From assembly GCF_964204645.1 (NCBI RefSeq), contig NC_134036.1, positions 4,742,600 through 4,806,599 of the forward strand: a DNA stretch of 64,000 nucleotides, given 5' to 3'. The stretch comes from Tubulanus polymorphus. Lineage: Eukaryota; Animalia; Nemertea. The notes beneath the pieces were generated by a model. That model saw only the letters and a program-made list of their open reading frames with translations. It was not told the origin of the DNA and ran no database searches. Below are positions 11,210-52,364 of this stretch, piece after piece; positions within the stretch are counted from its first letter, which is position 1; each line of letters begins with the position of its first letter. The position numbers and the translations under genes are program-made.

Positions 11210-14200
11210 TTATCGATGTCGTTTAGTTTTAGCCCGTATTGATTTCATATCGATAGTCAGTATTGTGTAAAGAAGGGGATTGAGGGACGAGTTGACCGGT
11301 AAGAAAAGAACCGCCAGCCAAGCCGCCACCTGATTCGGTATTTCTACCCGTAATACGGCGCAAAACTGAACAGTAATTAAAGGCAGCCAGCAAAATAGAT
11401 TACATAGATTTATTACTAAACTCCTGCGGGCCAAAACTAGTTCCGTAGGGTCGATTCTACCCGAACCCGTCCTGCTTCCTGAAACGAGTCGGTACATTTG
11501 CGCATAAGTCACCATTATTGAAGCAAGTATGAATGAGTTGAACACGGCAAAAATACCGAATGAATATTGCCAGGCGGTGACATCAATTGAAATCAAATTC
11601 ATTGGTAAACAAACTCCTGTACTGCTGTAGAAATTGTTTCTAAAGTAAGGGATCGGTGTATGAGGCAGCAACGCAATAGCACACAAAACAATCCAACATG
11701 TGCAACATATAATGCAAACAAATCTCAGGGACGTATTGGGGCCTCCAGAAAACGGATTCACGATATTTGAGAATCTGTGACGCGTCATATAGAGCAGAAA
11801 GATTAACGAACCTTCACAAGAAATGGACACCACGATTCCAGCAAAACGACAAAACAAACTGTCCGTCCATAATTCCGCATTGAGAAAATAAGTACCTTTA
11901 TAAATATAATCGGCTCCAGCAATCAAAAACAAATATATAGACATCAAGAAATCGCACAGAGCAACATTAATAATGATGATGTCTGAAGATGGATTTGAGG
12001 AGGAGAATCGAATCGCTCGAACGCGAAGAGAAATGACAATTCCGTTAGCTACAAAACTGAACACAGCGATGACCCAGATGATAGCTCTGAGGACTGTGTT
12101 ACTCATCAGGTCAGAACAGGAGGAAAATTGATCAGCTTCGGGGAGGCACCGGTCAACGTTCGGAGCCAAACAGCAAAATTTGTAAGAATCAGACTTTAAG
12201 GAGACTAATGATGTAAGATTGTTGAAAACATTTCTGTCGACCGAAATAACTTTGTAGTTTTTGGTTATATCCAGAATTTGAAGTGAGGTTAATCCAGAAA
12301 ATGCGTAAGGCGAAATATGATGGATTCTGTTACTGCTGATATTCAATGACTTTAGTGCTGGCAATCCTTGAAATACACGGTCAGAAAGCATCAAAATAAA
12401 AAGTCCACGAAGGTCAAGGTTTTGGAGCGAGCGCAAACCTTGTAAACTGTCTTCTTGTAAATAACGAATTGGATTTTTAGTTATCAATAACTCTTTCAAA
12501 CTGTACAAACCGGTGAATGTATCTGCCGATAATGATGTTATGTTGTTATATGTAAGGTCTAATGTACGCAGATTATGCAGGTTTGTGAACGAGTTTGGTA
12601 AGATATAAGACAATCCATTGAAGGAGATGTTGAGCATTCGAAGATAAACGAATGAAGAAAACGTCGACTCATTTAATCGAATTTCGTTATTTGACAAAAT
12701 TAAAACCCGAGTTGATGCCGGGAAAAGACCAGCAGTATCCGTCATACCATTATTTTTGCAATCAACTAAATTTCCTTGACATTTACAGCCCTTAGGACAC
12801 GTGATGTTACAGAAAGCCTCGTCGTCAGTTGTATGTTTACAATTTACGACTCCGTCACAAACTTCAGATTGTGAGATACAACGATTTTCCTGACCACATT
12901 TAAACATTCCTGGACATGAAAATGTCTCGCAGTTTTGTTCATCTTCTGAATTAGGACAATCTGATTGACCATCGCACACCTGTCTGACCGGTATACAGTA
13001 CGATGCTGGACATTTAACAGTACCAGCTGGACATTCAAATTCTTCACATCTCAATACGTGCTCAAGATTTCTACAAACTGGGAAACCATTTGTCATTCTT
13101 TCTAGAACACATCTGTGACGTCTTGAATAACAATGAGGAGAATTGAAAGAACATCTTTGTTCATCAGATTCCGTACAGAGATTTGTGAAGTTAGTCGTAC
13201 AGTCGTTTTTATTATTGCAATGGACCATAGGATTCACTGTAACATTAGTAGTTGTTACTAATTCATCTTCTTCGAGGCTTCCACTACAATCCACGACACC
13301 ATCCTGATATAACTGAGAACTGATACAGTCCCCGCTGTAACATAGGAATCCTTGACACATTTTAGTAGTGCATCCCACTTCATCGGAGCTATCTCTACAA
13401 TTATTAACACCGTCACATCTGTTAAAGCTACTGACACATTGACCACTTTTACAGCGAAATTGTTCGGGCAAACACGGGGGATGAAAACACGAGTTCTCAT
13501 CTGAACCATCCACACAATCCAGTATGAAATCACAAAAACCACTTATTGATATGAACTGACCACCATTACATTGAAACTGACTGTGTAAATTGATATCCGT
13601 ACAATTGAGTTCATCTTCGCCGTGTCGACAGTCGTGTCTGGTATCACATACGCGATGATCGCTGATACATCTTTGATCGTTACATTTAAACTGCCACGAT
13701 TTACAACCGCTTATAGAAGCTAACTCTTCATCAGTAACATTGTAGGAACACAAAACAGAATGCGCTGTATCTGTCGCATTATCAAACTGTTTCATCGTCC
13801 ATTTAACTGATTGAATATAAGTAATGTCATCTCTAGTGATTATTGGGTTTATAACTTGCAGTCTGTCATTAGATGTCATCATGAGAATAGAGCTATATTG
13901 ATGTTGATATTCAAATATTCTTAAAAAATTGAAAATATCATTTCTTGTGTACCTGTTTATTCTGCCTATTTCACTTCGGATGCTATGACACATCTTTGTC
14001 GCAGTTTCTGTATCTAAACCTCGATGCGTGTTCCAGTCTGTCAGTATTTGATAGGATTTTCTGCCTATGTTTACCCAACCAATCGTACAGCTCGATTCAT
14101 TGAAGCCAGTATTTTTGAAAAATGTGTCGTTTGTTGGTACATTTAACATTGTAACTGTTTTACTTTCGGCGTTGATTCTTTCTTTTTCGCAAATGAAACT

Positions 14201-17163
14201 CGTATGAACCTCTTCGATTTCGCAGGGGAATCGAACCCAGTTCGCTGATCCTCGTGGATTATTCAGTATCATCGCTGTACACGGCATATTGACGTCATTT
14301 ATCGGTTGTTTTCTGAGAGAAGATATCAATCCTTGAATAACTTCAGGTATCGTGTCGTTATTCGTAGGTTTATACCACTCTGTGTAGCTCAATGGTTTTC
14401 CATCAGTCCACGTGTAATAACCAGATCTAGCCTGAAATTTGAGTTAGAAATACATGATCCAAACGTAATTTCAAATTAAATCGTATTTTACAGATGTTTT
14501 AAAATTCACCTGCAGTTTTAATCCAATCATCATAATGAGCGCCCTCTGTGAATACGCACGTCGTAGAAGTACCGTAGCGAATAATGTTTTAATTTTAATC
14601 ATTTCCTGTTCTGAGTTGATACTGAGTAGATGTCCCGCGTACTTCTGTCTACAGTACAATTCGGCATTCTCCCAATTCACACGTTCGTCTCTGATGTATT
14701 TGATGCATGAAATTCCCGAATCTAGGAATCCTGATTTACAAAGTTGTTTAGCCGGTTTCACCGGTAACGACTGCTCCAATGTGTATTGCATTTTGAAAAG
14801 GGGGATGCGATTTGTCACTTCTAGTTTCAGACCAAAATGTGTTAGACTCTGAAATACAACTCCCGACATCGCTTTCTTGCCACATATTTTATATTCGTGT
14901 TGATGCGTTTGACCGTTAGATTCATGACCGACTATTTGTTGCATTACAATCGGGTCCTTGTCTATTTGAGTTGTCTTATCACATCGTATCGGTTCTATCC
15001 GTTTCAATACGAAACGATAATATCGAATCGGTTCAATCCTCTTGAATCGAAAATCATATATCAATGTTTCACTGCTGGTGAACGCTGGCATTCCGGCAGG
15101 GTAGTTTGGCGACTGAATGACCCCGCAATTGCCGTCCGGCGGTTTCTGGCTGAGAGCGTTTCTAGCAGATAGGGATGCTTGACATCGACGCCGTAGTTTA
15201 ATCAATAACGGATAGATCAGGAATGAATTCGTTTTACGCAATTTCACAGTGTTTAACACCAGACGATTTACTCGAGACTTACTAACCAAACTCATATACC
15301 TGTTACAAAACCCGATGAATAGATGTTCCTGAACACATCGGTCAATTTGATATTCGTGTTCTGATAATATATAAATGTTTCTCAAAGGAAGGCGTCGGTT
15401 TTCGGGTGTAATCACGAGACAGTGTGACGTTATATTGATCTGACGTTCTCGTTCCTTTAAAAGATACCCGTCACAGTCGGTAGGACGAAATCTGAGATAT
15501 GATTCATTTTCGACTGTTAACTGACCGTCCCAGTTATAAGCGTATCCTACTACAGTAACCGATCCACCTGATGTAATCAGACTGACGACGTTACGGTCTA
15601 ATGGGGCCTTCATGCGAGGACAATACGGACCGTATCGTCTAGCCGTGAAATTACCACCGTCGAATATGTAAAATCCAGCTCGCTCGCAGTTCTCTGATAA
15701 AACTGTTAGTTCCATATTCTCTTCATAAATATCAACTTTCCATTTAAACTCGAATCTAGTGACGCGATAATTCACGCCGATCTCCGTTCGTTTTTGGATC
15801 AATGACGTCGGCGTCGTGGATGTAATTCCATCCACAGGTACCTAAACACAAGACAGCCAAACATTAAGTACATTAAACAATTTTTGTCGATTCAACTATT
15901 TTTGATACAGAATAAGATAATTCCAACGCTGTTACTCACCAAACGGTTGTGAAATTTCATGTCTTGCATCGAAAGCGATTCTATCTGATAGTCTATTTCA
16001 AATCTCACATTTTCGTGGACTGTTGCTTTCAAAACGCACATTATCACGAGGAAACCGTCAGATTTAACACTCAGTGATTCTAGGTAGTTGTAACCGAGTA
16101 AAATATCAGTTCCTACAACGCGTAACCCTTCTAGTTTATATACACCAATGACGTCACCGGATGTGACGAGATGACGTGTCCAGTTGAAGACGACGTACTG
16201 TAACACCTGCACTGTGATAGACCAGCAGTGTAAGTGTTTCGATCGAGTTATTACGTGTAAACTGTTGTCGTCGGGGATGAGCACTCCCGACTCGCTATCA
16301 GAGATCTGAATCAACGGATTAGAGACGTTCCAATCTGATATCTTGTACGTCTGGACTAGAAAATATGACTCAAACATCTCCGAATTTGGTAAATAAATGA
16401 AGGCTTTATTTGTTTTAGTATAAAATGATGATGGTGGATGTCCGGACCTTTCTCTTATCATGCCTATTGTTTTACTTTTACTGTTCAGACCATCGTGTAT
16501 CGTAATAGGTTTTGATTGATATCGAGCATCCGATTTCAATATCATCTGAATAAATGTGAGATTCAAGGCATGGCCGTGAGATATTTCTATCCATTCAACA
16601 AACAACTGACATCGAAGACGTAATTTCATGTAGAACTTATATCCAATCGATGTCGGTAGATTTCTCAATTCTGGCGGAATGTTTTTGCAGACGGGGGTGA
16701 TTTTCAGTCGGCTTCGTTCAAACCGATATATGACATAAACCCGACTACCTCGCGCACCATCGACGTTACTCCTAAACATCAACGAGATCGAATCGTTACG
16801 GTGGATTTCATGTTTTCCATCGCCGCACAATCTATATTCAGACTCGTGGATGAGAAGGTAGTTATCACTACAGAATATTGACAGCTCGATATCGTGGTAA
16901 ACTTCGACGTGAAAAGTTCCCGGTAAAGAGCTGTTGACGAACCAACGACATTCAACACCGCTCGTAAACGAAGGGTAATTCGGTGAAACGATGTAACCGG
17001 ACGTTGAATCTAGCGGGTACCACGTGTTGTTACAAGAGGAACTTACCGTCACAGACGATTCATCGATAGAGTCTGTGCGATTAGCGCGCGCGATGCGAAC
17101 TCGACAGACGATCAGCGACCCTATAAACAGCGCTCTCAGTCGCTGCTCCATACCGAACAACAT
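11210..17163 (-). CDS. GRL101-like LDLa-LRR GPCR with CUB and C-type lectin ectodomain, copy 1 (~1,925 aa); exons 17163-15940, 15841-14510, 14431-11210
   Basis: Phase-0 introns 15939-15842 (GTGAGT..TTTAG, 98 nt) and 14509-14432 (GTGAAT..TTTCAG, 78 nt). Splicing restores the CTL motif MIGLKLQ|ARSGYYTWTDGKPLSYTEW. Also present: CUB (SGYIVSPNYP..CRW..LCG), ~7 LDLa, ~7 LRR, FSSCSDL hinge, 7TM ending NPLLY. Confidence 0.9.
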
Positions 17164-17463
17164 CAACGCGATGCAATTCCTTTACTATACAAATTCTGCT
17201 CGTCTCTCCTCAAGTCGTGTACATAAACGATGTTGAACTGTTCACTCGTGACTCTCGAAAGCAAATGTTCCCTGCACTCATTGATTTTTAGGATCCGAAT
17301 ATTTCAGCTTCTGATATTTTCCCGAAGGCGATTCGGGTATAACTTACTCGTACAGTCATCAACTCGAGTTTTCTCCGACTCAAAGGTATCTATTTCCCCG
17401 GTAATTACCATCCATCTACATATCTATGACAATTTTCGGCGCCACGTTCCGTCGCATCGACAG

Positions 17464-20642: not shown

Positions 20643-23600
20643 TCAATGTCGCAAACGTTTAGTTTTTGCTCGTATTGATTTCATATCGATAGTCAGTATT
20701 GTGTAAAGAAGGGGATTGAGGGACGAGTTGATCGGTAAGAAAAGAACTGCCAGCCAAGCCGCCACCTGATTCGGTATTTCTACCCGAAATACGGCGCAAT
20801 ACTGAACGATTATCAACGGCAGCCAGCAAAATAGATTACATAGGTTTATCACCAAACTCCTGCGTGCTAAAATCAGTTCGGTAGGATCGATTCTACCCGA
20901 ACCAGATCTGCTTCCAGATACGAGTCTGTACATTTGGGCATAAGTCCACATGATGGCAGCAAGTATGCCAGAGTTAAACACGGCAAAAATAACGAATGAA
21001 TATTGCCAGGCGTTGACATCAATTGAGATAAGATTCATAGGTAAACAAACTCCTGTATTGCCATAGAAGTTGTTTCCAAAGTAAGATGACTGTGACAGCG
21101 GTATTATAGAACTTGTACAAATGCATAACCAACATATGCAACACATAAAGGACACATATCTCGGAGAGGTAATTGGGCTTCCAGAAAATGGATTAACGAT
21201 ATTCGAAAATCTATGACGAGTTAAAATAAATAGAAACGTCAATGAGCCTTCACAAGAAATAGTCACCACAATTCCAGCGAAACTACACAATGAACTGTCC
21301 GTCCAAGTTTCAGAATTTAGGAAATAATCTCCTTTATAAACATAATCTGCACCCGCAATCAAAAACAAATAAATCGACATCAGAAAATCACAAGCTGCGA
21401 TGTTGATAATGAGGATGTCAGAGGATGTGTTGCGCTTTTCGGATGATGAAAGTCGAATAGATCGAACACGAAATAAAATGACAATACTGTTTGCGAAGAA
21501 ACTGAACGCAGCGATGACCCAGATGATAGCTCTGAGAACTGTGTTACCCATCAGATCAGAACAAGAGGAAAATTGATCGGCTTCGGGAAGGCACGTGTCA
21601 ACATTCGGAGCCATGCAGCAAAATTTGTAAGCATCAGACAATAGGGAAACTAATGATGTCAAATTTTCAAAAGCGCTAGTATCCGTGGAAATGAATTTAG
21701 AGTTGTTGGTTATATCGAGAATTCTAAGTTTTTTCAATCCTGAAAAAGCATATTGTGAAATATGATTGATTCTGTTCGTGCTGATATTCAACGACTGTAA
21801 TGCAGATAAACCTCTAAATACATTCCTTCCAAGCACCAACAAGCTGAGTCCATGAAGGTCGAGAAATATTAGTGACTTTAAATCTTGGTAGGTATCGCCC
21901 TCTAAATGACGGAGTGGATTTTCAGTTATCAATAATTTGTTCAAACTGTACAGACCGGTGAATGTATTTGTAGATAATGATGTTAAGTTGTTGTATGTCA
22001 GGTCTAATGTATGTAGATTATGCAGGTTTGAGAACGAGTTTGGGAAAATATAAGACAATTCATTGAAGGAGATGTTGAGCATTCGAAGATAAACGAATGA
22101 AGAAAACGTTGACTTACTTAATAGTATTTCGTTATTTGATAAAATCAAAACTCGAGTTGATTCCGAGAAAAGACCAGTAATATCTTTTAAACGAGCATTG
22201 GCACAATCGATCAAATGACCTTGACATTTACAGCCCATCCGACACGTGATGTTACAGAAAGCCTCGTCATCAGTCGTGTGTTTACAATTAACGACACCAT
22301 CGCAAATTTCAGATTGTGGAAGACATCGATTTTCCTGACCACATTTAAACATTCCTGGACATGAAAAATTCTCGCAGTTTTGTTCATCTTCTGAATTAGG
22401 ACAATCTGATTGGCCATCGCACACCTGTCTGATTGGTATACAGTATGAGGCTGGGCATTTCATAGTACCAGCTGGACATTCAAATTCTTCACATTTCAAT
22501 ACGTGCTCAAGATTTCTACAAACTGGGTAACCATTCGTCATTCTTTCTAGAATACATCTGTGACGTCTAGAATAACAATGCGGAGAATTAAAAGAACATC
22601 TTTGTTCATCATATTCTATACAGAGATTTGTGAAGTTAGTCGTGCAGTGGTTTTCATTATTACAATGAACAGTAGGATTCACTGTAACATTAGTAGTTGT
22701 TACTAATTTATCATTTTTAGGGCTTACACTGCAATCCACGACACCGTCCTGATACAACTGCGCACTAATACATTTCCCATTTGTACACAGGAACCCCCTA
22801 CAGAGTTTAGCAGTGCATCCAATTTCATCTGATACATCTTTACAATTAGGTATTCCATCGCATCTTTGAGACAATAAGAGACATTGACCACTTTCGCAGC
22901 GAAATTGTTGAGAAAAACAAGGAGGATAAAAACACGAGTTCTCATCGGAACCATCAACACAATCTTGTTTAAAATCACAGAAAGAACTCACTGATATAAC
23001 CTGACCATCACTGCATTGAAACTGACCGCGCGAATCAAGTTTATTAGATGTTGCTAATTCATCTTCTTCAAGGCTTCCAGTACAATCCACGACACCATCC
23101 TGATACAACTGAGAACTGATACACTCTCCACTTTTACACAGAAACCCCTGACACATTGCTGCGGTGCATCCTATTTCATCTGATCCGTCTTTACAATCAG
23201 TGACTCCGTCACATCTGTTCGACCTACTGACACATTGACCACTCTTACAGCGAACTTGTTCGAACAAACACGGGGGATGAAAACACGAGTTCTCATCTGA
23301 ACGATCGACACAATCCTGTATGAAATCACAGAAACCACTTATTGATATCACCTGACCATCGTAGCATTGAAACTGACTGTGTAAATTGATATCCGTACAA
23401 TTGAGTTCATCTTCACCGTGTTGACAGTCGTGTCTGGTATCACATACGCGATGGTCGCTGATACATCTTTGATCGTTACATTTAAACTGCCACGATTTAC
23501 ATCCGCTTATAGAAGCTAACTCTTCGTCAGTTACATTGAATGAACACAAAACAGAATGCGCTCTATCTGTCGCATTATCAAACTGTTTCATCGTCCATTT

Positions 23601-26600
23601 AACTGATTGAATATAAGTAATTTCATCTCTAGTGATTATTGGCGTTATAACGTGCATTCTGTCATTAGAAGTCATCGTTAGTATAGAGCTATATTGATGC
23701 TGATATTGAAATATCTTTATCATGTATGCAATTTCTTTTCCAGTGTAACTGCCAATTCTACCTATTTTACCACGGATGCTATGACACATCTTTGTCGCAG
23801 TGTCTAGATCAAAGCCTCGATGTTTGTTCCAGTCCGTCAGTATTTGATAGCATTTTTTATCTATGCTTACCCAACCAATCGTACAAATCGAGCCATGGAA
23901 ACCAGTATTTTGGAAATCTTTTTCCCGTATGATAAATGTGTCATCTTTGGTTACATTCAACATTGTAACTGTTGTATTCTCAATGTCGATTCTATTTGTT
24001 TCACAAATGAAACTCGTGTGAACCTCTTCGATTTCACAGGGGAATCGAACCCAGTTCGCTGAGCCTCGTGGATTATTCAGAATCATCGCCGTACACGGCA
24101 TATTGACGTCATTTATCGGTTGTTTTCTTTGAGGAGAGATCAATCCTTGAATAACTTCTGGGATCGTGTCGTTATTTGTAGGTTTATACCACTCTGTGTA
24201 GCTCAATGGTTTCCCATCAGTCCACGTGTAAACATTAGTCTCAGGCTGAAACGTACGAATGGAAAACGAAAGACAAAAAAGTCTGCATATTTTCCTGAAA
24301 AATAAGAAAAACGCCTTTTTAAAAGGAATTAAAAGTGTTTCATTACCTGCTGTTTCAATCCAATCATCATTATGAGCGCTTTCTGTGAATACGCGTTTAG
24401 AAGAAGTTCTGTTGCGAATAACGCTTTGATATTGACCATTTCCTGTTGTGAGTTGATACTGAATAGATGTCCAGCGTACTTTTGTCTACAATACAGTTCA
24501 GCATTCTCCCAATTCAGACGTTCATTTCTGATGTATTTTACGCAAGACATTCCCGAATCTAGAAATCCTGATTTACAGACATTTTCAAACTGTTTTATCG
24601 GTAAAGACTGTTCTAATGTGTATTGTATTTGGAATACAGGTATTTGATCCATTGATTTAATAAACAGATAGTAATGAGTAAAACTATGAAATACAAGTCC
24701 TGACATAGCATTATTGTCACATATTCTATTTTCGTGTCGATGTGTTTGACCGCTAGTTTCGTCACTGACCTGTTGTTGCATTACGATTGGGTCTTTGTCC
24801 CTTCGGCTTGCCTTCTCACATCGTATCATTGCAATGTGTTTTATGATAAATCTGTAGTATTTAATTGGTTTAAAGTGCCTTGGTCTAAACCCATACATTA
24901 AAATGGAACCCATCCCAAGTTGTGCTGATCCCGGGTAGTTTGGTGACTGAATGATTCCGCAATAATCATTCAGCGGTTCCTGAATGATACTACCGATCAT
25001 CGCATTCTTAGATCTTTGACATTTTCGTCGTAATTCAACGAATAATGGATAGGCCCAGAATAAATAAGTCCTTGCTATTTTCACGGTGTTCAATACGATA
25101 CCGTTATTGAGAATTTGGCGACTCAAACTCACATAACTGCTACAACGACCGTGTAATAGATGATCCTGAAAACATCGGTCAATTTGATATTCGTGTTCTG
25201 ATAATATATAAATGTTTCTCAAAGGTAGGCGTCGCTTTCCCGGTGTAATCACGAGACAGTGTGACGTCATGTTGATCTGACGTTCTTTATCCTTAAAAAC
25301 ATACCCGTCACAGTCGGTCGGACGAAATGTGAGGCGTGATTTCTTATCGACTGATGTTATTCCACCATCCCAGTTATAAGCGTATCCCACAACAGTAACC
25401 GATCCACCTGATGTAATCAAACTGCCGACATTTCGGTCACTCGGGCCACGTAAACGAGGACAATACGGACCGTATCGTCTAGCCGTGAAATTACCACCGT
25501 CGTATATGTAAAATCCAGCTCGCTCGCAGTTCTCCGATAAAACTGTTAGTTCCATATTCTCTTCATAGATTTCATATTTCCATTTAAACTCGTATCTATA
25601 GATGCGATAATTCAATGTGATTCCCGCTCGTTGTTGGATCAGACCGGATTGCGACTTGAATAATAGTCCGTCATAAAATATCTAAACACAAGTTTTCCAA
25701 TATTGAGTACATCAGGCAATTTTTTCGATTTAAATAATTTTAATGCCGAAAAAAATGATTCTACAGCAGTTACTCACCAAACTTTCTGTGATGACTTGTC
25801 TCGAAATAGAATCCGCTTTAAACATTATTTCAAATCTCATTTTCCCGTGAACTGTTTCTTTCAGAACGCACAGTATGACGAGAAAGCCGTCAGATTTAAC
25901 ACTCAATGATTGCAGGTAGTTGTATCCGAGTAGAATATCAGTTCCTACAACGCGTAACCCTTCTTGTTTATATACACCGACGACGTCACTGGACGAGACG
26001 AGGTCACGTGTCCAGTTGAAGACGACGGACTGTAACACCTGCACTGTGATAGACCAGCAGTGTAAGTGTTTCGATCGAGTTATTACGTGTAAACTGTTGT
26101 CATCGGGAATGAGCACTCCCGACTCGTTATTAGAGATCTGAACCAGCGAATTAGACACGTTCCAATCTGATATTCTGTAAATCTGGACTAAAAGCTGTGA
26201 CTCAAACATCAGCGAAAACGGCAGAGAGATGACGGCTTTATTTGTTTTGGTGTAAAATGATGACGGTGGATGTCCGGATTGTTCACGTATTGAACCTATA
26301 GGTTTACTTTTGGTCTTCAATCCGTCGTGGATTACAATAGGCATTGACTGAATTCGGACATCAGACTTATATATTAACTGAATGAATGTGATATTCATCG
26401 CATAGCCGTTTGAAATTTCCGTCCATTCCACAACCAACTGGCATCTAAGACGTAATTTCATGTAGAACTTATAACCAATCGATGTTGGTAGATTTCTCAA
26501 TTCTGGAGGGAGGTATCTGCAGTCGGGTCTGATTCTCAATCGGCTTCGTTCATAACGATATATGATATAAACGCGACTACCCCGCGCACCATCGACGTTA

Positions 26601-26995
26601 CTTCTAAACATCAACGAGATCGAATCGTTACGGCGGATTTCATGTTTTCCATCACCGCACAATCTGATATCAGACTCATGGACGAGAAGGTAGTTATCAC
26701 TACAGAATATTGACAGCTCGATATCATGGTAAACTTGGACGTGAAAAGTTCCCGGTAAAGAGCTGTTGATGAACCAACGACATTCAACACTGCGCGTTAA
26801 CGAAGGGTAATTCGGTGAAACGATGTAACCGGCCGTAGAATCTAGTGGGTACCACGTGTTGTTACAAGACGAACTTACCGTCGCAGACGATTCCTCGATA
26901 GAGTCTGCGCGATCAGCGCGCGCGATGCGAACTTGACAGACGATCAGCGACGCTATAAACAGCGCTCTCAGTCGCTGCTCCATACCGAACAACAT
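20643..26995 (-). CDS. GRL101-like CUB-CTL-LDLa-LRR GPCR, copy 2 (~2,051 aa, 3 extra LDLa modules); exons 26995-25778, 25681-24347, 24245-20643
   Basis: Phase-0 GT-AG introns 25777-25682 (96 nt) and 24346-24246 (101 nt) at positions homologous to copy 1. An alternative in-frame ATG lies at 27049. Confidence 0.9.
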
Positions 26996-34725: not shown

Positions 34726-37700
34726 TCAATGTCGCAAACGTTTGGTTTTTGCGCGTATGGATTTCATATCGATAGTCAGTATTGTGTAAAGAAGGGGATT
34801 GAGGGACGAGTTGATCGGTAAGAAAAGAACCGCCAGCCAAGCCGCCACCTGATTCGGTATTTCTACCCGTAAGACCGCGCAAAACTGAACGATAATTAAC
34901 GGCAGCCAACAAAATAAATTACACAGATTTATCACTAAACTCCTGCGTGCCAAAACCAGTTCGGTAGGGTCAATTCTACCCGAACCAGACCTGCTTCCAG
35001 ATACGAGTCTGTACATTTGCGCATAAGTTGCCATTATTGTACCAAGAATGGTAGCGTTAAAGACGGCAAAAATAGCGAATGAATATTGCCAGGCGTTGAC
35101 ATCAATTGATATTAAATTCATAGGTAAACAAACTCCAGTAGTACCGTAGAATTTAATACTGAAATAGGGTAATTCTGATAATGGAATTATGGCAATTGCA
35201 CTAATTGATAACCAGCATATGCCACAAATAATGGACACATATATCGGTGATGTAATCGGGCTTCCGGAAAATGGGTTAACGACATTTGAGAATCTATGAC
35301 GAGTTAGAATAAACAGAAACGTCAACGAGCCTTCACAAGAAATAGTGACCGTAACTCCAGCGAAACTACACAATGAACTGCCCGTCCAAGCTTCAGAATT
35401 TAGGAAATAAACTCCTTTGTAAACGTAATCTGCTCCCGCGATCAAAAACAAATAAATCGACATCATAAAATCGCAAGCAGCGATATTAATAATGAGGATA
35501 TCAGAAGATGCGTTACGCTTTTTGGAGGACGAAAGTTGAATTGATCGAAAACGTAATAAAATGACAATCGTGTTCGCGGAGAAACTAAACGCAGCGATGA
35601 CCCAGATGATAGCTCTGAGGACTGTGTTACCCATCAGATCAGAGCAAGAGGAAAACTTACCAGCTTCGGGAAGGCACTGGTCAACATGCGGAGCCATACA
35701 GCAAAATTTGTAAGCGTCAGACATTAGGGAAACTAATGATGTTAGATTGTCAAAAACACCTCTTTCTGTCAAAATGTAATGGGAATTATTGGATAAATCA
35801 AGAATTCTAAGTTTATTTAATCCAGAAAAAGCGTATTGTGAAATATGATGGATTCTGTTACTGCTAATATTCAACGACTGTAATGCAGATAAACCTTTAA
35901 AGGCATTTCTACCAAGCACTAATAAATAAAGTTCCTGTAGATCGAGAACTTTGAGTGATTTCAAATCTTTGAAGGTCTCATCCTCTAAATGACGTAGTGG
36001 ATTTTTAGTTATCAATAGCCCTTTCAAACTGGACAAACCGGTGAATGAATTTGTAGATAAGGATGTTATGTTGTTGTATGTCAGGTCTAATGTATGTAGA
36101 TTATGCAGCTTTGAGAACGACTTTGGTAAAATATCAGACAATTCATTGAAGGAAATGTTGAGCATTCGAAGATAAACGAAAAGTGAAAACGTCGACTGAT
36201 TGAATCGAATTTTGTTACTTGACAGAATTAAAACTCGAGTTGATTCTGAGAAAAGACCAGTAATATCTGTAAAAAGTGAATGGCTACAATCGATCAAATG
36301 ACCTTGACATTTACAACCTCGAGGACACGTGACGTTACAGAAAGCCTCGTCATCAGTTGTGTGTTTACAATTGACGAAACCGTCACAAACTTCAGATTGT
36401 GGAATACATCGATTTTCCTGACCACATTTAAACAAACCTGGACATGAAAATGTCTCGCAGTTTTGTTCATCTTCTGAATTAGGACAATCTGATTGACCAT
36501 CGCACGCCTGTCTGATCGGTATACAGTACGATGCTGGACATTTTAAAGTTCCTGCTGGACATTGAAATTCTTCACATCTCAAAACGTGCTCAAGATTTCT
36601 ACAAACTGGGAAGCCATTCGTCATTCTTTCTAGAATACATCTGTGACGTCTTGAATAACATTGAGGAGAATTGAAAGAGCATCTTTGTTCATAAGATTCC
36701 GAACAGAGATTTGTGAAGTTAGTCGTACAGTGGTTCTCATTATTGCAATAAACAGTAGGATTCACTGTAACATTAGAAGCTGTTACTAATTCATCTTCTT
36801 CGAGGCTTCCACTACAATCCACGACACCATCCTGATACAACTGAGAACTGATACAGTCTCCACTGTTACACAGAAACCCCTGACAAACTTGAGCGGTGCA
36901 TCCCAACTCATCTGAACCATCATAACAGTTTGTGACTCCATCACATATGTGAGTCCAACTGACACATTGACCACTTTTGCAGCGAAATTGCCTGGCTAAA
37001 CACGGTGGGTGAAAACACGAGTTCTCATCAGAACCATCCACACAATCCTGTATTAAATCACAGAAACCACTTATTGATATCACCTGACCATCGTAGCATT
37101 GAAACTGACTGTGTATATTGATATCCGTACAATTGAGTTCATCTTCACCATGTTGACAGTCGTGTCTGGTATCACATTCGCGATGGTCGCTGATACATCT
37201 TTGATCGTTACATTTAAACTGCCACGATTTACATCCGCTTATAGAAGCTAACTGTTCATCAGTTACATTGTAGGAACACAAAACAGAATGCGCTGCATCT
37301 GTCGCATTATCAAACTCTTTCATCATCCATTTAACTGATTGAATATAAGTAATTTCATCTCTAGTGATTATTGGGTTTATAACTTGCAGTCTGTCATTAG
37401 ATGTCATCGTTAGTAAAGAGGTGTATTGATATTTATAATGAAATATTCTTATCAAATTTGAAATATATTTTTTTGTGTAAACGCTTATTCTGCCTATTTC
37501 ACCTTGGATGCTCTGACACATCTCTGTCGCAGTTTTTATATCTAAACCTCGTTGTTTGTTCCAGTCTGTCAGTATTTGATAGCATTTTTTATCTAGGTTT
37601 ACCCAACCAATTGTACAGCTCGAATCATTGAAACCAGCGTCTTGCAATGATTTTTCCCATATCAGAATTCCATCGTTTTTTACATTTAAAATTGGTACCG

Positions 37701-40700
37701 TTCTATTTTCGTTGTCAATTCTTTCCGTTTCGCAAATGAAACTCGTGTGAACCTCTTCGATTTCGCAGGGGAATCGAACCCAGTTCGCTGATCCTCGTGG
37801 ATTATTCAGTATCATCGCCGTACATGGCATATTGCCGTCATTAATTGGTTGTTTTCTTACAGCAGATATCAGACCTTGAATAACTTCTGGTATCGTGTCG
37901 TTATTTGTAGGTTTATACCACTCTGTGTAGCTCAATGGTTTTCCATCAGTCCACGTGTAACTATTAGTCCCAGGCTGAATTGTAAGATCAGACAACAATT
38001 GAAAAAATTCGACATTTTCTTCGTGAAATAAGATGGAAATAGCCTTTGTATAATCAAAATATTCTAAAAGGTGTATTTTGAATTTACCTGCAGTTTTAAT
38101 CCAATCATCATTATTAGCGCTTTCTGTGAATACGCGTTTAGAAGAAGTTTCGTCGCAAATATTGTTTTGATTGCCATCATTTCCTGTTCTGAGTTGATAC
38201 TGAGTAGATGTCCCGCGTAATTCTGTCTACAATACAATTCAGCATTGTCCCAATTCAGACCTTCATCTCTGGTGTATTTAACGCATGAAATTCCCGAATA
38301 AAGAAATCCTGATTCACAGATATTTTCAAACTGTTTTACCGGTAACGACTGTTCTATTGTGTATTGAATTTGAAATATAGGTATTTTATTTATCACCACT
38401 AAGTTGACACTTCTATCGATAAAACTATGAAATACAAGTCCCGGTATCGCGTTATTATCACATATTTTCTTATTGTGAAGATGTGTTTGACCGGTAGATT
38501 TATCTCTGATCTGTTGTTCTATTACAATCGGGTCGTTGTCATTTCCAGTTTCCTTCTCACATCGTATCATTGTAATATATTTCAATACAAATCTGTAATA
38601 TTGATACAGTCCCCTAGGCCTGAAACTGAAAATACATTTGAATGTTCTTATGGTGGTTGTTTGTAATCCCGGGTAGTCTGGTGATTGAACGATTCCACAA
38701 TTGTCATCTGGTGGTTCCTGGTCGATGAACCCTGAATAAGTCTTTACCCTTTGACATTTACGTCGTAGTTTAACGAATAATGGATAGATCCAGAATAAAT
38801 TCGCCCTTGTTATTTTCACAATGTTTAATACGAGACCGTTACTGAGAAACTGACTCCTCAATATCAGAAACCTGCTACAATATCCGTACAATAGGTGATC
38901 CTGAAGACATCGGTCTATTTGATATTCGTGTTCTGATAATATATTAATATTTCTCAAAGGAAGGCGTCGGTTTTCGGGTGTAATCACGAGACAGTGTGAC
39001 GTCATATTGATCTGACTTTCTCCTTCCTTGAAAACATACCCGTCACAGTCGGTAGGACGCAATCTGAGATATGATTCCTCATCGACTGATGTTATTCCAC
39101 CATCCCAGTTATAAGCGTATCCTACTACAGTTACCGATCCACCTGATGTAATCAAACTGCCGACATTTCGGTCGCTCGGGCCACGTAAACGAGGACAATA
39201 CGGACCGTATCGTCTAGCCGTGAAATTACCACCGTCGAATATGTAAAATCCAGTTCGCTCGCAGTTCTCTGATAAAACTGCTAGTTCCATATTCTCTTCA
39301 TAAATATCAACTTTCCATTTATACTCGTATCTTGTGACGTAGTAATTCACGATGATCTCCTTTCGTCTTTGAAACAGGTTAGAAGGATGCAAAAACCACG
39401 ATCTTTTGATTACCTAAACATAGGTTAGCAAATATTAAGATAATCCTGACACTTTTTTAAACTTAAATGATTTCGATATAGGATAGAATAATTCCACAGC
39501 TGTTACTCACCCAACCGTTGTATACCTTCACGTCGTCTATCGAAAGAGACTGCGTTTTATACTTAATTTCAAACCTCACATCATCGGGAACTGTTTCTTT
39601 CAAAATGCACAGTACGACGAGAAAGCCGTCAGATTTGACACTCAGCGATTCCAGGTAGTTGTAACCGAGTAAAATATCAGTTCCCACAACGCGTAACCCT
39701 TCTAGTTTATATAGACCGATGACGTCACTTGATGAAGCGAGATCACTTCGTGTCCAGTTGAAGACGACGTACTGTAACACCTGCACTGTGATAGACCAGC
39801 AGTGTAAGTGTTTCGATCGAGTTATTACGTGTAAACTGTTGTCATCGGGAATGAGCACTCCCGACTCGTTATTAGAGATCTGAACCAGCGAATTAGACAC
39901 GTTCCAATCTGATATTCTGTAAATCTGGACTAAAAGCTGTGACTCAAACATCAGCGAAAACGGCAGAGAGATGACGGCTTTATTTGTTTTGGTGTAAAAT
40001 GATGACGGTGGATGTCCGGATTGTTCACGTATTGAACCTATAGGTTTACCTTTGGCCTTCAATCCGTCGTGGATTACAATAGGCATTGACTGAATTCGGA
40101 CATCAGACTTATATATTAACTGAATGAATGTGATATTCATCGCATAGCCGTTTGAAATTTCCGTCCATTCCACAAACAACTGGCATCTAAGACGTAATTT
40201 CATGTAGAACTTATAACCAATCGATGTTGGTAGATTTCTCAATTCTGGAGGGAGGTATCTGCAGTCGGGTCTGATTCTCAATCGGCTTCGTTCATAACGA
40301 TATATGATATAAACGCGACTACCTCGCGCACCATCGACGTTACTTCTAAACATCAACGAGATCGAATCGTTACGGCGGATTTCATGTTTTTCATCACCGC
40401 ACAATCTGATATCAGACTCATGGACGAGAAGGTAGTTATCACCACAGAATATTGACAGCTCGATATCATGGTAAACTTGGACGTGAAAAGTTCCCGGTAA
40501 AGAGCTGTTGATGAACCAACGACATTCAACACCGCGCGTTAACGACGGGTAATTCGGTGAAACGATGTAACCGGACGTAGCATCTAGTGGGTACCACGTG
40601 TCGTTACAGTACGAACTTACCGTCACAGACGATTCATCAATAGAGTCTGCGCGATCAGCGCGTGCGATGCGAACTCGACAGACGATCAGCCATGCTATAA

Positions 40701-40737
40701 ACAGCGCTCTCAGTCGCTGCTCCATACCGAACAACAT
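34726..40737 (-). CDS. GRL101-like CUB-CTL-LDLa-LRR GPCR, copy 3 (~1,933 aa); exons 40737-39511, 39413-38088, 37974-34726
   Basis: Phase-0 GT-AG introns 39510-39414 (97 nt) and 38087-37975 (113 nt). An alternative in-frame ATG lies at 40791. Confidence 0.9.
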
Positions 40738-44106: not shown

Positions 44107-44182
44107 TATTACTATTACTATTACTATTACTATTACTATTACTATTACTATGATTATGATTATGATTATGATTATGATTATG

Positions 44183-44229
<47 letters not shown>

Positions 44230-46388: not shown

Positions 46389-49300
46389 TTAATGTCGTGC
46401 GCGTTTAGTTTTTGCTCGTATGGATTTCATATCGATTGTCAGTATGGTGTAAAGAAGGGGATTGAGGGACGAGTTGATCGGTAAGAAAAGAACCGCCAGC
46501 CAAGCCGCCACCTGATTCGGTATTTCTACCCGTAATACCGCGCAAAACTGAACGATAATTAACGGCAGCCAGCAAAATATATTACACAGATTTATCACCA
46601 AACTCCTACGTGCCAAAATAAGTTCGGTAGGATCAGCTCTACCCGAACCGGACCTGCTTCCAGATACGAGTCTGTACATTTGCGCATAAGTCACCATTAT
46701 TGTAGCAAGTATGAATGAGTTAAACACGGCAAAAATAGCGAATGAATATTGCCAGGCGTTGACATCAATTGAAATCAAATTCATAGGTAAACAAACTCCA
46801 GCTGAGCCGTAGAATTTGTTCCCGAAGTAAGATGATTGTGACAGCGGTATTATGGAAATAGTAGTAATTGATAACCAACATACGCAACAAATTATTGATA
46901 CATATCTCGAAGATGTAATCGGGCTTCCAGAAAATGGATTAACGATATTCGAAAATCTATGACGGGTTAGAATAAATAGAAACGTCAATGAGCCTTCACA
47001 AGAAATAGTGACCGTAACTCCGGCGAAACTACACAATGAACTTTCCGTCCAAGTTTCAGCGTTTAGAAAATAAACTCCTTTATAAATGTAATCTGCACCC
47101 GCGATCAAAAACAAATAAATCGACATCAGAAAATCACAAGCTGCGATGTTGATGATGAGGATGTCAGAAGATTTGTTCCGATTTTCGGAGGATGAAAGTC
47201 GAATTGATCGAAGACGAAATAAAATGACGCCACTGTTCGCGAAAAAACTGAACGCAGCGATGACCCAGATGATAGCTCTGAGGACTGTGTTACCCACCAG
47301 ATCAGAACAAGAGGAAAATTGATCGGCTTCGGGAAGGCACGTGTCAACATTCGGAGCCATGCAGCAAAATTTGTAAGCATCAGACGCTAGCGAGACCAAT
47401 GATGTCAGATTGTCAAAAAGGCCTCTTTGTGTAGAAATGAATTTAGAGTTGTTGGTTATATCGAGAATTCTGAGTTCATTCAATCCTGAAAACGCATATC
47501 GTGAAATATGATGGACTCTGTTACTGCTGATATTTAGCGACCGTAATGTAGATAAACCTCTAAATACATTTCTATCAAGCAGCAATAGCGAAAGGCCTTG
47601 AAGGTCGAGAATTTTGAGTGCCAATAAATCTTGGAAGGCGTCGTCCTCTAAATGACGTAGTGGATTTGCAGAAATCAATAAGTGTTTCAAATTATACAAA
47701 CCTGTGAATGTATTTGTAGATAATGATGTTATGTTGTTGTATGTCAGGTCTAATGTATGTAGATTATGCAGGTTTGTGAATGAGTTCGGTAAAATGTAAG
47801 ATAATTCATTGAAGGTGATGTTGAGAATTCGAAGATAAACGAATGTAGAAAACGTCGACTCATTTAAACGAACTTCGTTATTCGACAGAACTAAAACTCG
47901 AGTTGATGCCGAGAAAAGACCAGTAATATCTTTTATACCAGCATTACCGCAATCCATTAATTGACCTTGGCATTTACAGCCAGTAGGACACGTGACATTA
48001 CAGAAAGCCTCGTCATCAGTTGTATGTCTACAATTTACGAAACCATCACAAACTTCAGATTGTGGAATACACCGATTTTCCTGGCCACATTTAAACATTC
48101 CCGGACATGAAAATGTCTCGCAGTTTTGTTCATCTTCTGAATTAGGACAATCTGATTGACCATCGCATACCTGTCTGATCGGTATACAGTACGATGCAGG
48201 ACATTTTACAGTACCAGCTGGACATTCAAATTCTTCACATCTCAATACGTGCTCAAGATTTCTACAAACTGGGAAACCATTTGTCATTCTTTCAAGAATA
48301 CATCTGTGACGTCTTGAATAACAATGAGGAGAATTGAAAGAACATCTTTGTCCATCATATTCTACACAAAGATTTGTGAAATTAGTCGTGCAGTGGTTTT
48401 TATTATTACAAAGAACAGTAGGATTCACTGTAACATTAGTAGTTGTAACTAATTCATCTTCTTCAAGGCTTCCACTACAATCCACGACACCATCCTGATA
48501 CAACTGCCAACTGATACACTCTCCACTGTTACACAGGAACCCCTGGCACATTTTAGTAGTGCATCCCATTTCATCGGAGCTATCTCTACAATTATTAACA
48601 CCGTCACATCTATTAAAGCTACTGACACATTGACCACTTTTACAGCGAAATTGTTCGGACAAACACGGGGGATGAAAACACGAGTTCTCATCTGAACCAT
48701 CAACACAATCCTGTATGAAATCACAAAAACCACTTATTGATATAACACGACCATCATCGCATTGAAACTGACTGTGTAAATCGATATCCGTACAATTGAG
48801 TTCATCTTCACCGTGTTGACAGTCGTGTCTGCTATCACATACGCGATGGTCGCTGATACATCTTTGATCGTTACATTTAAACTGCCACGATTTACAACCG
48901 CTTATAGAAGCTAACTCTTCGTCAGTTACATTGTACGAACACAGAACAGAATGCGCAGTATCTGTCGCATTATCAAAATGTTTCATCGTCCATTTAACTG
49001 ATTGAATATAAGTAATTTCATCTCTAGTGATCATTGGGTTTATAACTTGCAGTCTGTCATTAAAAGCTATCGTTAGTATAGAGCTATATTGATGTTGAAA
49101 GTGAAATAATGTTATTAGGTTCAACGTTTCATTTTCTGTGAATCTGTTTATCGTGCCTCTTACGGCCCCGATGCTATCACACATCTCTGTCGCAGCTGTT
49201 GTATCTAAACTACGATGTTTGTTCCAGTCAGTCAGTATTTGATAGCAGATCTTTTCCATGCTTACCCAACCAATCGTGCAGCTGGAGCCATTGAAAACAG

Positions 49301-52300
49301 TGTCATGAACCGTTTTTTCCCGTACTAGAATTGTGTCGTTTTTTGGTTGCATTAAACATTGCAACTTTTGCATTTGTTAAGTCGGTTCTATCCGTTTCAC
49401 AAATGAAACTCGTGTGAACCTCTTCGAGTTCGCAGGGGAATCGAACCCAGTTCGCTGATCCTCGTGGATTATTCAGTATCATCGCTGTACACGCCATATT
49501 GACGTCATTTATCGGTTGTTTTCTGAGAGGAGGTATCAATCCTTGAATAACGTCTGGTATCGTGTCGTTATTTGTACGTTTATACCACTCTGTGTAGCTC
49601 AATGGTTTTCCATCAGTCCACGAGTAATAAACAGATGTAACCTGAAAATTGAAGGTTGCAAATATATGATCAAAAGATTTCATCACAATCCTATGAAATA
49701 ATACATTAATGAGGTTACAAAATTTACCTCCAGTTTTAATCCGATCATCATTATGAGCGCTTTTTGTGAATACGCCTGTCGGAGAAGTTCAGTTGCGAAT
49801 AATCGCTTAATAGCCATCATTTCCTGTTCTGAGTTGATACTGAGTAGATGTCCCGCGTACTTCTGTCTACAATACAGTTCAGCATTCTCCCAATTCAGAC
49901 GTTCATCTCTGATGTATTTTACGCAAGAAATTCCCGAATCTAGAAATCCCGATTTACAGACATTTTCAAACTGTTTTATCGGTAACGACTGTTCTAATGT
50001 GTATTGTATTTGAAATGTAGGTATACGATGTTTTGCCTCAAAGAAGAGATCGTAATCAATAAAACTGTAAAGTACAAGTCCCGGTATCGCGTTAATGTCA
50101 CATATTCTCTTTTCGTGTTGATGGTTTTGGCCACTCAATTCACCGTTGATGCTTTGTTTTATCACAATCGGGTCCTCGTCCTGCGGAATTGATTTTTCGC
50201 AACGCATCTTTGCAACGTATTTCAAAATGAATCTGTAATATCGACTTAGCACCGCGGTGTTACTTCCAAAACTATATCTTAATATTTCTGCGGTGTATTC
50301 CGCCGTGCCTGGGTAGTTTGGTGACTGCATAATACCGCAGCTATCATTCGGTGGTTCCTGGTTATTACGCCCGCCGACTGTGGCTATCTTCGATCGTTGA
50401 CATTTACGTCGCAGTTTCACCAATAGCGGATTAAACCAGAATGGATTCGAGAACTGTATTTTCACAGTATTCAAAAGGACACTGTTATCTAGTGACTTAC
50501 TACTCAACGTCAGATACCTGCTACAAGATCCGAATGATATAGAATCCTGAAAACATCGGTCAATTTGATATTCGTGTTCTGATAATATGTAAATGTTCTT
50601 CAAAGGAAGGCGTCGGTTTTCGGAGGTAATCACGAGACAATGTGACGTCATATTGACCTGACGTGTTCCCTCCTTTAAAACGTACCCGTCACAGTCGGTA
50701 GGATGTAATCTGAGATATGATTCCTCATCGACTGTTAACTGACCCTCCCAGTTATAAGCGTATGCCACTACAGTAACAGATCCACCTGATGTAATCAGAC
50801 TGACCACGTTACGGTTGTATGTCCATAAACGAGGACAATACGGACCGTATCGTCTAGCCGTGAAATTACCACCGTCGTATATGTAAAATCCCGCTCGCTC
50901 GCAGTTCTCTGATAAAACTGTTAGTTCCATATTCTCTTCATAAATATCAACTTTCCATTTAAACTCGTATCTAGTGACGCGATAATTCACCGAGACTTTA
51001 TTTCGTTTTGGGAACAGCGAGTGGGGAATCATAAACCACATTTTGTTCACAGACACCTAAACATAAGTTAGCCATTATTACGTACAAAATTTTGCATATT
51101 CTTTATCATTTTCGATTAACTCAAATTTGTAACTCACCGGACGGTTGAGGATCTTCATTTCTTCGATCGAAATCGATTCGATTCTGAAATTTGTTTCAAA
51201 TCTTATATCGCCGTGAACCGTCACTTTCAAAACGCACAGTATGACGAGAAATCCGTCAGATTTTACACTATGCGATTCCAGGTAGTTGTTACCGAGTAAA
51301 ATATCAGTTCCCACAACGCGTAACCCTTCTAGTTTATATACACCGATGACGTCACCAGCTGTGACGAGATCACGTGTCCAGTTGAAGACGACGTACTGTA
51401 ACACCTGCACTGTGATAGACCAGCAGTGTAAGTGTTTTGATCGAGTTATTACGTGTAAACTGTTGTCATCGGAAATGAGCACTCCCGATTCGTTATTAGA
51501 GATCTGAATCAACGGATTAGATACATTCCAATCTGATATCTTATAAACCTGAACTAAAAGCTGCGACTGAAATCGCACTCGACGATAAAGCAATGATATG
51601 ACGGCTTTGTTTGTTTTAGTATAAAATGATGAAGGTGGATGACCGGTTTGTTCTCGTATAAGGCCTATAGGTTCACTGCTGGTGTTCCATCCGTCGTGGA
51701 TTTTAACAGTCATCCCTGGATCAGCACCTGGTATTACTTCCAATTTCAACTTGCTTAAAGTCAAGTTTATACCAAAACCATCCGGTATCCCGATCCAGTC
51801 CAAAAACAATTTACACGTTGGCAAGTAGCTTAAATGATATTTATATCCTATCGATGTTTGTAATTCGTTCAATCCGCGATATTTGTGGCAATCGTGACTA
51901 ATTGACAAACGATTTCGTTCATAACGATATATGACATGAACCCGACTACCTCGTGCACCATCGACGTTACTTCTAAACATCAACGAGATCGAGTCGTCAC
52001 GGCGGATTTCATGTTTTCCATCACCGCAGAATCTGTTATCAGACTCGTAGACGAGAAGGTAGTTATCACTACAGAATATTGACGGCTCGATATCGTGGTA
52101 AACTTGGACGTGAAAAGTTCCCGGTAAAGAGCTGTTGATGAACCAACGACATTCAACACCGTGCGTTAACGAAGGGTAATTCGGTGAAACGATGTAACCG
52201 GACGCAGAATCTAGTGGGTACCACGTGTAATTACAAGACGAACTTACCGTCACAGACGATTCCTCGATAGAGTCTGCGCGATCAGCGCACGCGATGCGAA

Positions 52301-52364
52301 CTTGACAGACGATCAGCGACGCTATAAACAGCGCTCTCAGTCGCTGCTCCATACCGAACAACAT
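46389..52364 (-). CDS. GRL101-like CUB-CTL-LDLa-LRR GPCR, copy 4; exons 52364-51138, 51056-49728, 49641-46389; +1 frameshift at the T6 run 49339-49344 (pseudogene allele or sequencing error)
   Basis: Phase-0 introns 51137-51057 (81 nt) and 49727-49642 (86 nt). Removing one A from ACC AAAAAA CGAC restores NATKNDTILVREK, matching paralog NVTKDDTFIIREK. Confidence 0.82.

Follow-up and report, generated by a model that had tools for sequence, protein, structure and literature searches.

The canonical GRL101 of Lymnaea consists of LDLa modules, leucine-rich repeats (LRRs) and a seven-transmembrane (7TM) domain, and GRL101-type receptors are orphans. A tandem array of genes with this core lies on the minus strand, at positions 11210-52364, of a 64,000-nt stretch of contig NC_134036.1 from the nemertean Tubulanus polymorphus; this whole stretch is referred to here as the window. 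[quoted passage not shown] They would belong to a family of about 300 genes that serves as a diversified sensor repertoire, a role inferred from comparison. We regard this joint reading as probable, though by no means secure.

Clusters of related receptors have been described in molluscs. In Biomphalaria sudanica, the SudRes2 region linked to schistosome resistance contains 12 GRL101-like receptors with a C-type lectin (CTL)-LDL-LRR-7TM architecture, for which a role in recognition has been proposed (PMC12297450). Apple snails (Ampullariidae) carry 29-132 tandem GRL101 genes, which are expressed in tentacles and labial palps (PMC6573481). Expression of the GRL101 type is tentacle-specific in Charonia (PMC13403566). 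One GRL101-type receptor is expressed in the sensory tentacles of the crown-of-thorns starfish, and insulin-like peptides have been suggested as ligands of receptors of this type (PMC6267866).

The nemertean array shares with SudRes2 the order of CTL, LDLa, LRR and 7TM domains and the arrangement of mutual paralogs in a dense tandem cluster (PMC12297450). It differs in having about 300 family members rather than 12, in carrying CUB domains, none of which is reported in the snail, and in encoding proteins that are roughly twice as long. With the apple snails it has in common a lineage-specific tandem burst of GRL101-type G-protein-coupled receptors (GPCRs), which in those animals are read as environmental or chemical sensors (PMC6573481). 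However, the nemertean burst is independent, occurs in another phylum and reaches about 280-370 genes, compared to 29-132 per genome in snails, where expression is known. Lymnaea GRL101 and the GRL101-like type-C2 LGRs of protostomes and ambulacrarians resemble the nemertean receptors in their several LDLa modules, LRRs, cysteine hinge, rhodopsin-type 7TM domain and orphan status. An unnamed partial product of Lymnaea stagnalis in the database (P0019), which is among the GRL101-like matches, has the same LDLa-LRR-7TM domains. In contrast to these relatives, the nemertean proteins have about 1,000 additional N-terminal residues, HRF, QRY, HRY or YRF in place of E/DRY, a very short C-terminal tail and about 300 copies. 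RXFP1 (PDB 7TMW) is the best solved relative; it aligns across LRR, hinge and 7TM domain and likewise has LDLa N-terminal to the LRRs. It serves as a hormone receptor, however, is the product of one gene, and has one LDLa and no CUB or lectin-like modules.

The architecture outlined in the preliminary description of this DNA is not in itself new. CTL-LDL-LRR clusters have been published (PMC12297450), and CUB and/or Lectin_C domains occur in GRL101-like database proteins from molluscs and echinoderms (Haliotis, Argopecten, Mytilus and Asterias). Lectin- and CUB-bearing GRL101-like receptors and large tandem expansions in molluscs are already known. What is distinct here is the length and composition of an extension that has no sequence-detectable relatives, together with the altered DRY motif, the copy number and the cassette-like variation. 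When the N-termini of 153 fetched database homologs were compared by BLAST, neither exon 1 nor exon 2 found a match.

The array contains twelve open reading frames (ORFs) of 424-1187 amino acids in four groups of three. Each minus-strand gap between them was read and every in-frame GT...AG pair tested, and one pair was clearly best in each of the eight gaps that separate the exons of the four genes. All eight predicted introns are GT-AG, lie in phase 0 and are 78-113 nt long, with GTGAGT or GTAAxT donors and pyrimidine-rich YAG acceptors (Table 1). The exons of genes 1-4 sum to about 1925, 2051, 1933 and 1930 amino acids, in agreement with the lengths of 1,930-2,050 estimated before. Gene 2 is longer than the others because a 351-nt unit is tandemly duplicated at 22690-23377, which adds three LDLa modules. 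In all four genes the sequence before intron 2 ends in MIGLK(L/Q)(Q/E), and 5-7 residues followed by WTDGKPLSYTEW stand on the other side. Exon 1 also opens in the same way in all four genes, with MLFGMEQRLRALFI followed by a hydrophobic stretch that has ARA at its end and looks like a signal peptide. Because this opening is common to the four genes and its fifth residue, a Met, is nearly invariant among paralogs, translation probably starts in exon 1 (in gene 1 the first ATG is at 17163 and the conserved Met at 17151).

Earlier, thirteen ORFs had been joined through these introns into four whole receptors. The set of twelve ORFs, eight introns and four genes stands, as do the size, type, phase and identical positions of the introns. 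The arithmetic does not, since thirteen ORFs joined at eight points leave five pieces. What accounts for the fifth piece is a +1 frameshift within exon 3 of gene 4, which had been missed and of which the thirteenth ORF (49303-49686, 127 amino acids) is the product. When gene 4 is aligned to genes 1-3, a surplus A turns up in the A6 run at 49339-49344. The frame that begins at the acceptor at 49641 reads to FNATKK and then a stop, and homology resumes in the next frame at NDTIL. Either a real mutation has inactivated gene 4, or the assembly contains a homopolymer error here. As assembled, the array comprises three intact genes and one frameshifted gene. The junctions 15940/15841 and 14510/14431 given previously for gene 1 are correct as flanking exon bases and one base off as intron limits.

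The same gene structure recurs elsewhere in the genome. Twenty paralogs sampled from eight contigs all contain three intact, collinear ORFs (1903-1956 amino acids in total where complete), with both introns at the same positions and in phase 0. These paralogous introns are 69-912 nt long, are not limited to multiples of three and nearly all hold in-frame stops; 39 of the 40 are GT-AG and one is GC-AG. Together with the four window genes this makes 24 copies, and order, orientation, phase and spacing of the ORFs are kept in every one. The encoded paralogs are 55-80% identical to one another. Between the window genes, exons are 76-94% and introns 37-74% identical at the nucleotide level, and identity drops to about 30% directly outside the ATG and the stop. 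Because intron positions and phase are shared by the paralogs, exons are conserved over introns and flanks, and intron 2 cuts through a domain, the introns are read as real, and comparative evidence for the three-exon gene models is strong.

Two paralogous introns deserve mention in their own right. Intron 2 of paralog L019 (L019:3217-3291) is the GC-AG case. In paralog L020, intron 2 (L020:3257-3337) is 81 nt long, in frame and free of stops, so that an open frame of about 1,560-1,610 amino acids runs over exons 2 and 3. A Pfam scan of this natural open frame did not raise Lectin_C above E 0.01.

Exon 3 encodes the receptor core. Domain, folding and homology searches were run per exon, and gene 1 exon 3 matches the Pfam profiles Ldl_recept_a (E 1.2e-32), LRR_8 (1.2e-30) and 7tm_1 (1.4e-18). 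Over the four genes the respective E-values are 1e-32 to 4.5e-52, 1e-25 to 6e-44 (best 5.8e-44) and 1e-18 to 1e-20. Between four and six LDLa stretches score in each gene, ahead of LRR_8; by eye, the cysteine pattern of gene 1 shows six modules and that of gene 2 nine. When the LRR-hinge-7TM part is used to query solved structures, it finds RXFP1 in a single stretch (E 2.7e-70), then LGR4 (1e-49) and FSHR, LHCGR and TSHR (1e-25 to 1e-29). A query with the 7TM domain alone gives the same ranking (RXFP1 1.8e-47, LHCGR 1.1e-24). The hinge, CLPEADQFSSCSDL, aligns to the hinges of RXFP1 and LHCGR, and FSSCSDL stands opposite FNPCEDI of LHCGR. CWLP in transmembrane helix 6 and NPLLY in helix 7 are present in 21-22 of 23 copies.

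Judged by sequence and alignment, this core is a type-C LGR by every structural criterion tested; of the class-A activation motifs, CWxP and NPxxY are kept and E/DRY is altered. By alignment scores it is closer to relaxin-type receptors than to type A (glycoprotein-hormone) or type B (LGR4-6). Membership of the GRL101 subtype (type C2) is likely. The best named database matches are GRL101-like proteins (29-37% identity over 50-80% of exon 3), and the multiple LDLa modules are those of type C2, whereas type C1 relaxin receptors have one. The initial assignment of a GRL101 kind of core, and of FSSCSDL as an LGR/RXFP-type hinge, is thus borne out by the Pfam domains, the database matches and the nearest solved structure.

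The N-terminal extension appears to be built largely from CUB-like and lectin-like modules. In exon 1 the Pfam CUB profile (cut-off 21.4 bits) scores 30.9 bits in gene 1, 26.2 in gene 4 and 20.4 in gene 3, with no match reported for gene 2. An AlphaFold2 (AF2) model of exon 1, computed from 23 paralogs, places two consecutive beta sandwiches at residues 38-150 and 152-274, the second with a predicted local distance difference test score (pLDDT) of about 70-88. Foldseek matches residues 38-274 to the tandem CUBs of C1r/C1s, PCPE-1, cubilin and neuropilin (E 1e-6). The exon 2 model contains beta sandwiches at residues 140-357, and its best Foldseek matches are the CUBs of Kremen, C1r, MASP-2 and neuropilin (E 5e-5; TM-score up to 0.55, for single CUBs). 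Language-model neighbours of exon 2 residues 1-235 are CUB clusters, which is a lead only. Several CUB-like folds had been expected, and one CUB at Pfam level plus further CUB-like sandwiches are what these searches find. Among 1.84 billion representative proteins, residues 1-350 of exon 2 have no detectable relative, and all matches are confined to residues ~340-430.

The matched end of exon 2 is the first half of a lectin-like domain. Its last ~90 residues match true Lectin_C proteins in phmmer searches (to E 5.5e-13) and fit positions 2-36 of the Lectin_C profile at 16-19 bits, under the cut-off of 22.6. Residues 3-84 of exon 3 align to the C-terminal part of the C-type-lectin profile (hhalign 87.5%, E 3.6e-6). 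Because exon 3 residues 1-84 thus fit the C-terminal part and the end of exon 2 the N-terminal part, intron 2 is placed within a lectin-like domain, as had been proposed; the two halves are recognised in exons 2 and 3, and the flanking residues were verified in all four genes. A second lectin-like domain was claimed at the same time. It is probable at residues ~114-235 of exon 3, where weak alignments to PDB entries (E 0.03 with a profile of residues 1-255) and language-model neighbours point to it; hhalign on exon 3 found the first domain and not the second.

Recognition of glycans by the lectin-like domain, part of the original interpretation, is not indicated by its sequence. The positions of the sugar- and Ca2+-binding motifs (EPN/QPD and WND) read QPI(ND) and WVR, with no change at Q42, P43, W65 or R67 among 23 copies. 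Few parts of the protein are as well conserved as this domain, and this speaks against glycan pattern recognition being the function that varies.

Three counts give the size of the family. A search of the T. polymorphus genome with exon 2 returned 366 candidates, of which 95 were scored; each of these has E < 1e-141, and all but 2 are free of stops. Degenerate DNA patterns for WTDGKPLSYTE and NSSLNPLLYTI gave 280 and 316 genomic hits, and the reversed patterns used as controls gave 0. From the two motif counts and the exon 2 candidates together, the family is put at roughly 300 members (about 280-370). Most of them form tandem arrays, which lie on contigs C3, C5, C6, C8, C9, C10 and C12. The expansion within this lineage, suspected from four genes, is therefore seen genome-wide. 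At least 17 further copies lie past the window genes, on the plus strand at 4.82-4.94 Mb of contig C12. Three sequencing runs with contigs on gene 1 behave as DNA, and are taken as such because intron 1 is covered continuously with exon 2 (one contig reads from exon 2 into intron 1 with zero mismatches). Logan contigs of these runs have a depth of ~1e4 on conserved blocks and ~30-50 on variable blocks. The best database match, P0001, is itself from T. polymorphus (contig C9). It is 689 amino acids long, with LDLa, LRR and 7TM domains, shares 56% identity with exon 3 and reads QRY in place of DRY. Either this member of the family is shorter than the others or its gene model is truncated.

All three exons are under purifying selection, since pairwise ratios of nonsynonymous to synonymous divergence (dN/dS) among the window genes lie between 0.24 and 0.61 in every exon (0.30-0.53 in exon 1, 0.39-0.61 in exon 2 and 0.24-0.29 in exon 3). 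Overall dS reaches 0.3-0.6. Along the genes, however, divergence is a mosaic: several blocks have a dS of 0.02-0.15, and variable patches one of 1.3-2.0. Two hypervariable patches stand out, one in the second CUB-like domain of exon 1 and one in the CUB-like sandwiches of exon 2 (Table 1). Mean amino-acid p-distance is 0.49 in patch 1 and 0.57 in patch 2, compared to 0.17-0.24 in most remaining segments and 0.31 in the LRRs. The depth of public contigs falls to single-copy level at both patches (30-50 at patch 2), while neighbouring conserved bins stand at ~1e4.

This pattern looks like the outcome of exchange between paralogs. Distances in patch 1 correlate poorly with those of the flanking scaffold (r 0.04-0.29), whereas scaffold segments correlate well among themselves (r 0.44-0.81). 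By local identity, the best-matching pair of window genes shifts with position in the gene. A tract from ~0.9 kb of 5' flank through most of exon 1 is 93-100% identical (mostly 98-100%) in genes 2 and 3, which looks like a recent gene conversion or partial duplication. Because dS is uneven, partners switch and patch 1 is uncorrelated with the scaffold, the scaffold appears to be homogenised by gene conversion, whereas the histories of the cassettes seem to be older and independent.

Table 1. Positions of exons, introns, variable patches and shared tract in the T. polymorphus receptor array (window coordinates; aa, amino acids, numbered within each exon)
Feature	Position	Strand	Description
Gene 1 exon 1	15940..17163	-	408 aa: signal-peptide-like helix, CUB aa 38-150, CUB-like sandwich aa 152-274, 130-aa region of unknown fold
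Gene 1 intron 1	15939..15842	-	98 nt, GT-AG, phase 0; homologous introns in 20 paralogs; conserved less than exons
Gene 1 exon 2	14510..15841	-	444 aa: CUB-like modules (CGxIQSPNYP motif aa 236-250), then lectin-like N-terminal part aa ~365-444
Gene 1 intron 2	14509..14432	-	78 nt, GT-AG, phase 0; cuts lectin-like domain
Gene 1 exon 3	11210..14431	-	1073 aa + stop
Gene 1 exon 3, first parts			Lectin-like C-terminal part aa 1-84; probable second lectin-like domain aa ~114-235; six LDLa aa ~243-541
Gene 1 exon 3, later parts			LRR aa ~542-760; hinge FSSCSDL aa 769-775 (12107-12127); 7TM aa ~776-1056 (11264-12106); 18-aa tail
Gene 2	20643..26995	-	Exon 1 25778-26995, exon 2 24347-25681, exon 3 20643-24245 (1200 aa)
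Gene 2 intron 1	25777..25682	-	96 nt
Gene 2 intron 2	24346..24246	-	101 nt
Gene 3	34726..40737	-	Exon 1 39511-40737, exon 2 38088-39413, exon 3 34726-37974
Gene 3 intron 1	39510..39414	-	97 nt
Gene 3 intron 2	38087..37975	-	113 nt
Gene 4	46389..52364	-	Exon 1 51138-52364, exon 2 49728-51056, exon 3 46389-49641, frameshifted
Gene 4 intron 1	51137..51057	-	81 nt
Gene 4 intron 2	49727..49642	-	86 nt
Hypervariable patch 1	16480..16698	-	Exon 1 aa 156-228, second CUB-like domain; dN 0.39-0.56, dS 1.3-2.0, conservation 0.53-0.63
Hypervariable patch 2	14777..15331	-	Exon 2 aa 171-355, CUB-like sandwiches; dN 0.3-0.8, dS 0.7-2.1, conservation 0.47-0.67
Genes 2/3 shared tract, 5' part	26995-27900 and 40737-41640		Runs into exon 1; rest of genes 60-96% identical

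Other open reading frames lie around and within the array. Class-A GPCR ORFs of 385-392 amino acids, apparently intronless, are located at 8125-9279 (-), 55438-56604 (-), 59338-60495 (+) and 62263-63441 (+). They score E-values of 1e-7 to 1e-10 with 7tm_1 and with chemoreceptor-type profiles (Srw/Srx). The one at 8125-9279 lies in two ORFs and is possibly broken. At 842-4654 (-), where the window is rich in GC (57%), there is an open frame of 1270 amino acids that is rich in R, A, D and S and includes a run of 27 Gln (TGC repeat 3609-3688). It has no Pfam match and is probably a disordered protein or a large exon of one. The ORFs at 43618-44347 were rejected as genes: an (ATTATG)85 microsatellite at 43721-44229 makes four overlapping ORFs there, on both strands.

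Taken together, these features suggest how the receptors might work. Each paralog would bind its own extracellular ligand through the variable CUB-like modules, with proteins or peptides being likelier ligands than glycans. Binding would be relayed to the 7TM domain by a conserved stack of elements (lectin-like, LDLa, LRR and hinge), as in RXFP1-type receptors. The family as a whole would then constitute a diversified sensor repertoire. By analogy, a chemosensory or environmental role is the most likely, with an immune role second. Chemosensation is favoured because of the size of the family, the precedents for tentacle expression in molluscs (PMC6573481, PMC13403566, PMC6267866) and the neighbouring class-A GPCR genes.

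Several results weigh against the favoured reading of the array as a set of working, diversified sensors. None of the Logan contigs of the three DNA-like runs has a joint at any predicted splice site of gene 1. Contig 'skips' such as 14417>14599 were rejected as splicing, being paralog contigs that align on conserved flanks only. The one possible RNA run with the species label (X4, 2015) yields no contig for the 3.7 kb of gene 1 that were compared (13600-17300). It is blank even on gene 1 blocks that are at least 90% identical among hundreds of paralogs, which is not proof of absence; expression of the family in this sample may be very low. The acidic residue of E/DRY is replaced throughout (HRF in 11 copies, QRY in 4, HRY in 2 and YRF in 1) with Arg3.50 retained, whereas D/ER stands at the corresponding position in 13 GRL101-like or relaxin-like proteins from other animals. 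Because of this loss, coupling to G proteins is treated as a prediction, and it may be atypical. Confidence in the AF2 models is low overall (mean pLDDT 49 for exon 2 and 55 for exon 1), and no fold could be assigned from them to exon 1 residues 279-408 or exon 2 residues 1-150. Positive selection in the patches is not demonstrated, as sliding-window dN/dS is 0.2-0.5 and never exceeds 1 save in tiny low-dS windows. Finally, the evidence here does not decide between chemosensory, immune and settlement functions.

Other explanations question whether these are large receptor genes at all. The three ORFs of each group (CUB, middle and LDLa-LRR-7TM) could be independent neighbouring genes, a view to which the want of a spliced read across the joins lends something. 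It is scarcely credible, however, given that the second and third ORFs begin at AG acceptors without a conserved Met or signal peptide, that the first and second each cross a consensus GT donor and stop a few codons inside the intron, that the gap between the second and third cuts a lectin-like domain in two, and that the whole arrangement is the same in all 24 copies. The array might also be mostly debris, made up of recently amplified duplications whose frames are open only through youth or homogenisation by conversion, with little or no expression. The runs examined offer no RNA support, gene 4 is frameshifted, 2 of the 95 scored exon 2 copies contain stops, and P0001 is the one family-like T. 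polymorphus model in a protein database whose coverage of this genome's own proteins is possibly incomplete. We nevertheless consider decay highly improbable. All twenty paralogs keep three intact exons at only 55-80% protein identity, dN/dS stays at 0.24-0.61 while dS reaches 0.3-0.6, and introns and flanks have diverged past alignment where exons have not. Cysteine patterns, CWLP, NPLLY and the hinge are retained as well.

If the genes are functional receptors, two alternatives to chemosensation concern what they detect. The family could be an innate-immune repertoire for pattern recognition, in which pathogens or parasites are recognised by variable CUB-like and lectin-like ectodomains and the 7TM domain passes on the signal. 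Its CTL-LDL-LRR-7TM architecture and dense tandem clustering recall SudRes2 (PMC12297450), hypervariable ectodomain patches in many paralogs with a gene-conversion mosaic would suit it, and CUB and lectin-like domains are frequent in complement-type recognition proteins, with C1r, C1s and MASP among the Foldseek matches. This remains a rather unlikely account, for the lectin-like domain is highly conserved and lacks the EPN/QPD and WND motifs, some 300 7TM receptors is a number typical of chemoreceptor families, and those molluscan expansions for which expression is documented point to tentacles (PMC6573481, PMC13403566). A neuroendocrine function as receptors for insulin/relaxin-like or other peptide hormones, as proposed for type-C2 LGRs generally, is very improbable. 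RXFP1 is indeed the closest solved relative and insulin-like peptides have been put forward as GRL101-type ligands (PMC6267866), but about 300 paralogs with hypervariable cassettes are ill-suited to a hormone system, canonical GRL101 lacks the ~1,000-residue CUB and lectin-like extension, and the DRY motif is altered family-wide.

A more ambitious extension of the favoured sensor reading, which we put forward tentatively and regard as doubtful, is that LGR-type receptors have here become a combinatorial repertoire. About 300 germline receptors would share a gene-converted chassis and carry paired CUB-like cassettes decoupled from the scaffold, with one or few expressed per sensory or immune cell. 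On that view it would be the largest of the known LGR families and would exemplify cassette-style diversification in a GPCR. Variation is focused in the two CUB-like patches, and the lectin-like, LDLa, LRR and 7TM parts are nearly constant. The roughly 300 copies, near-wholly intact, amount to natural variation for mapping the ligand-binding surface of the orphan GRL101-type class. Independent bursts of GRL101 receptors would extend from molluscs to nemerteans, and ribbon worms would have a candidate chemosensory or immune repertoire.

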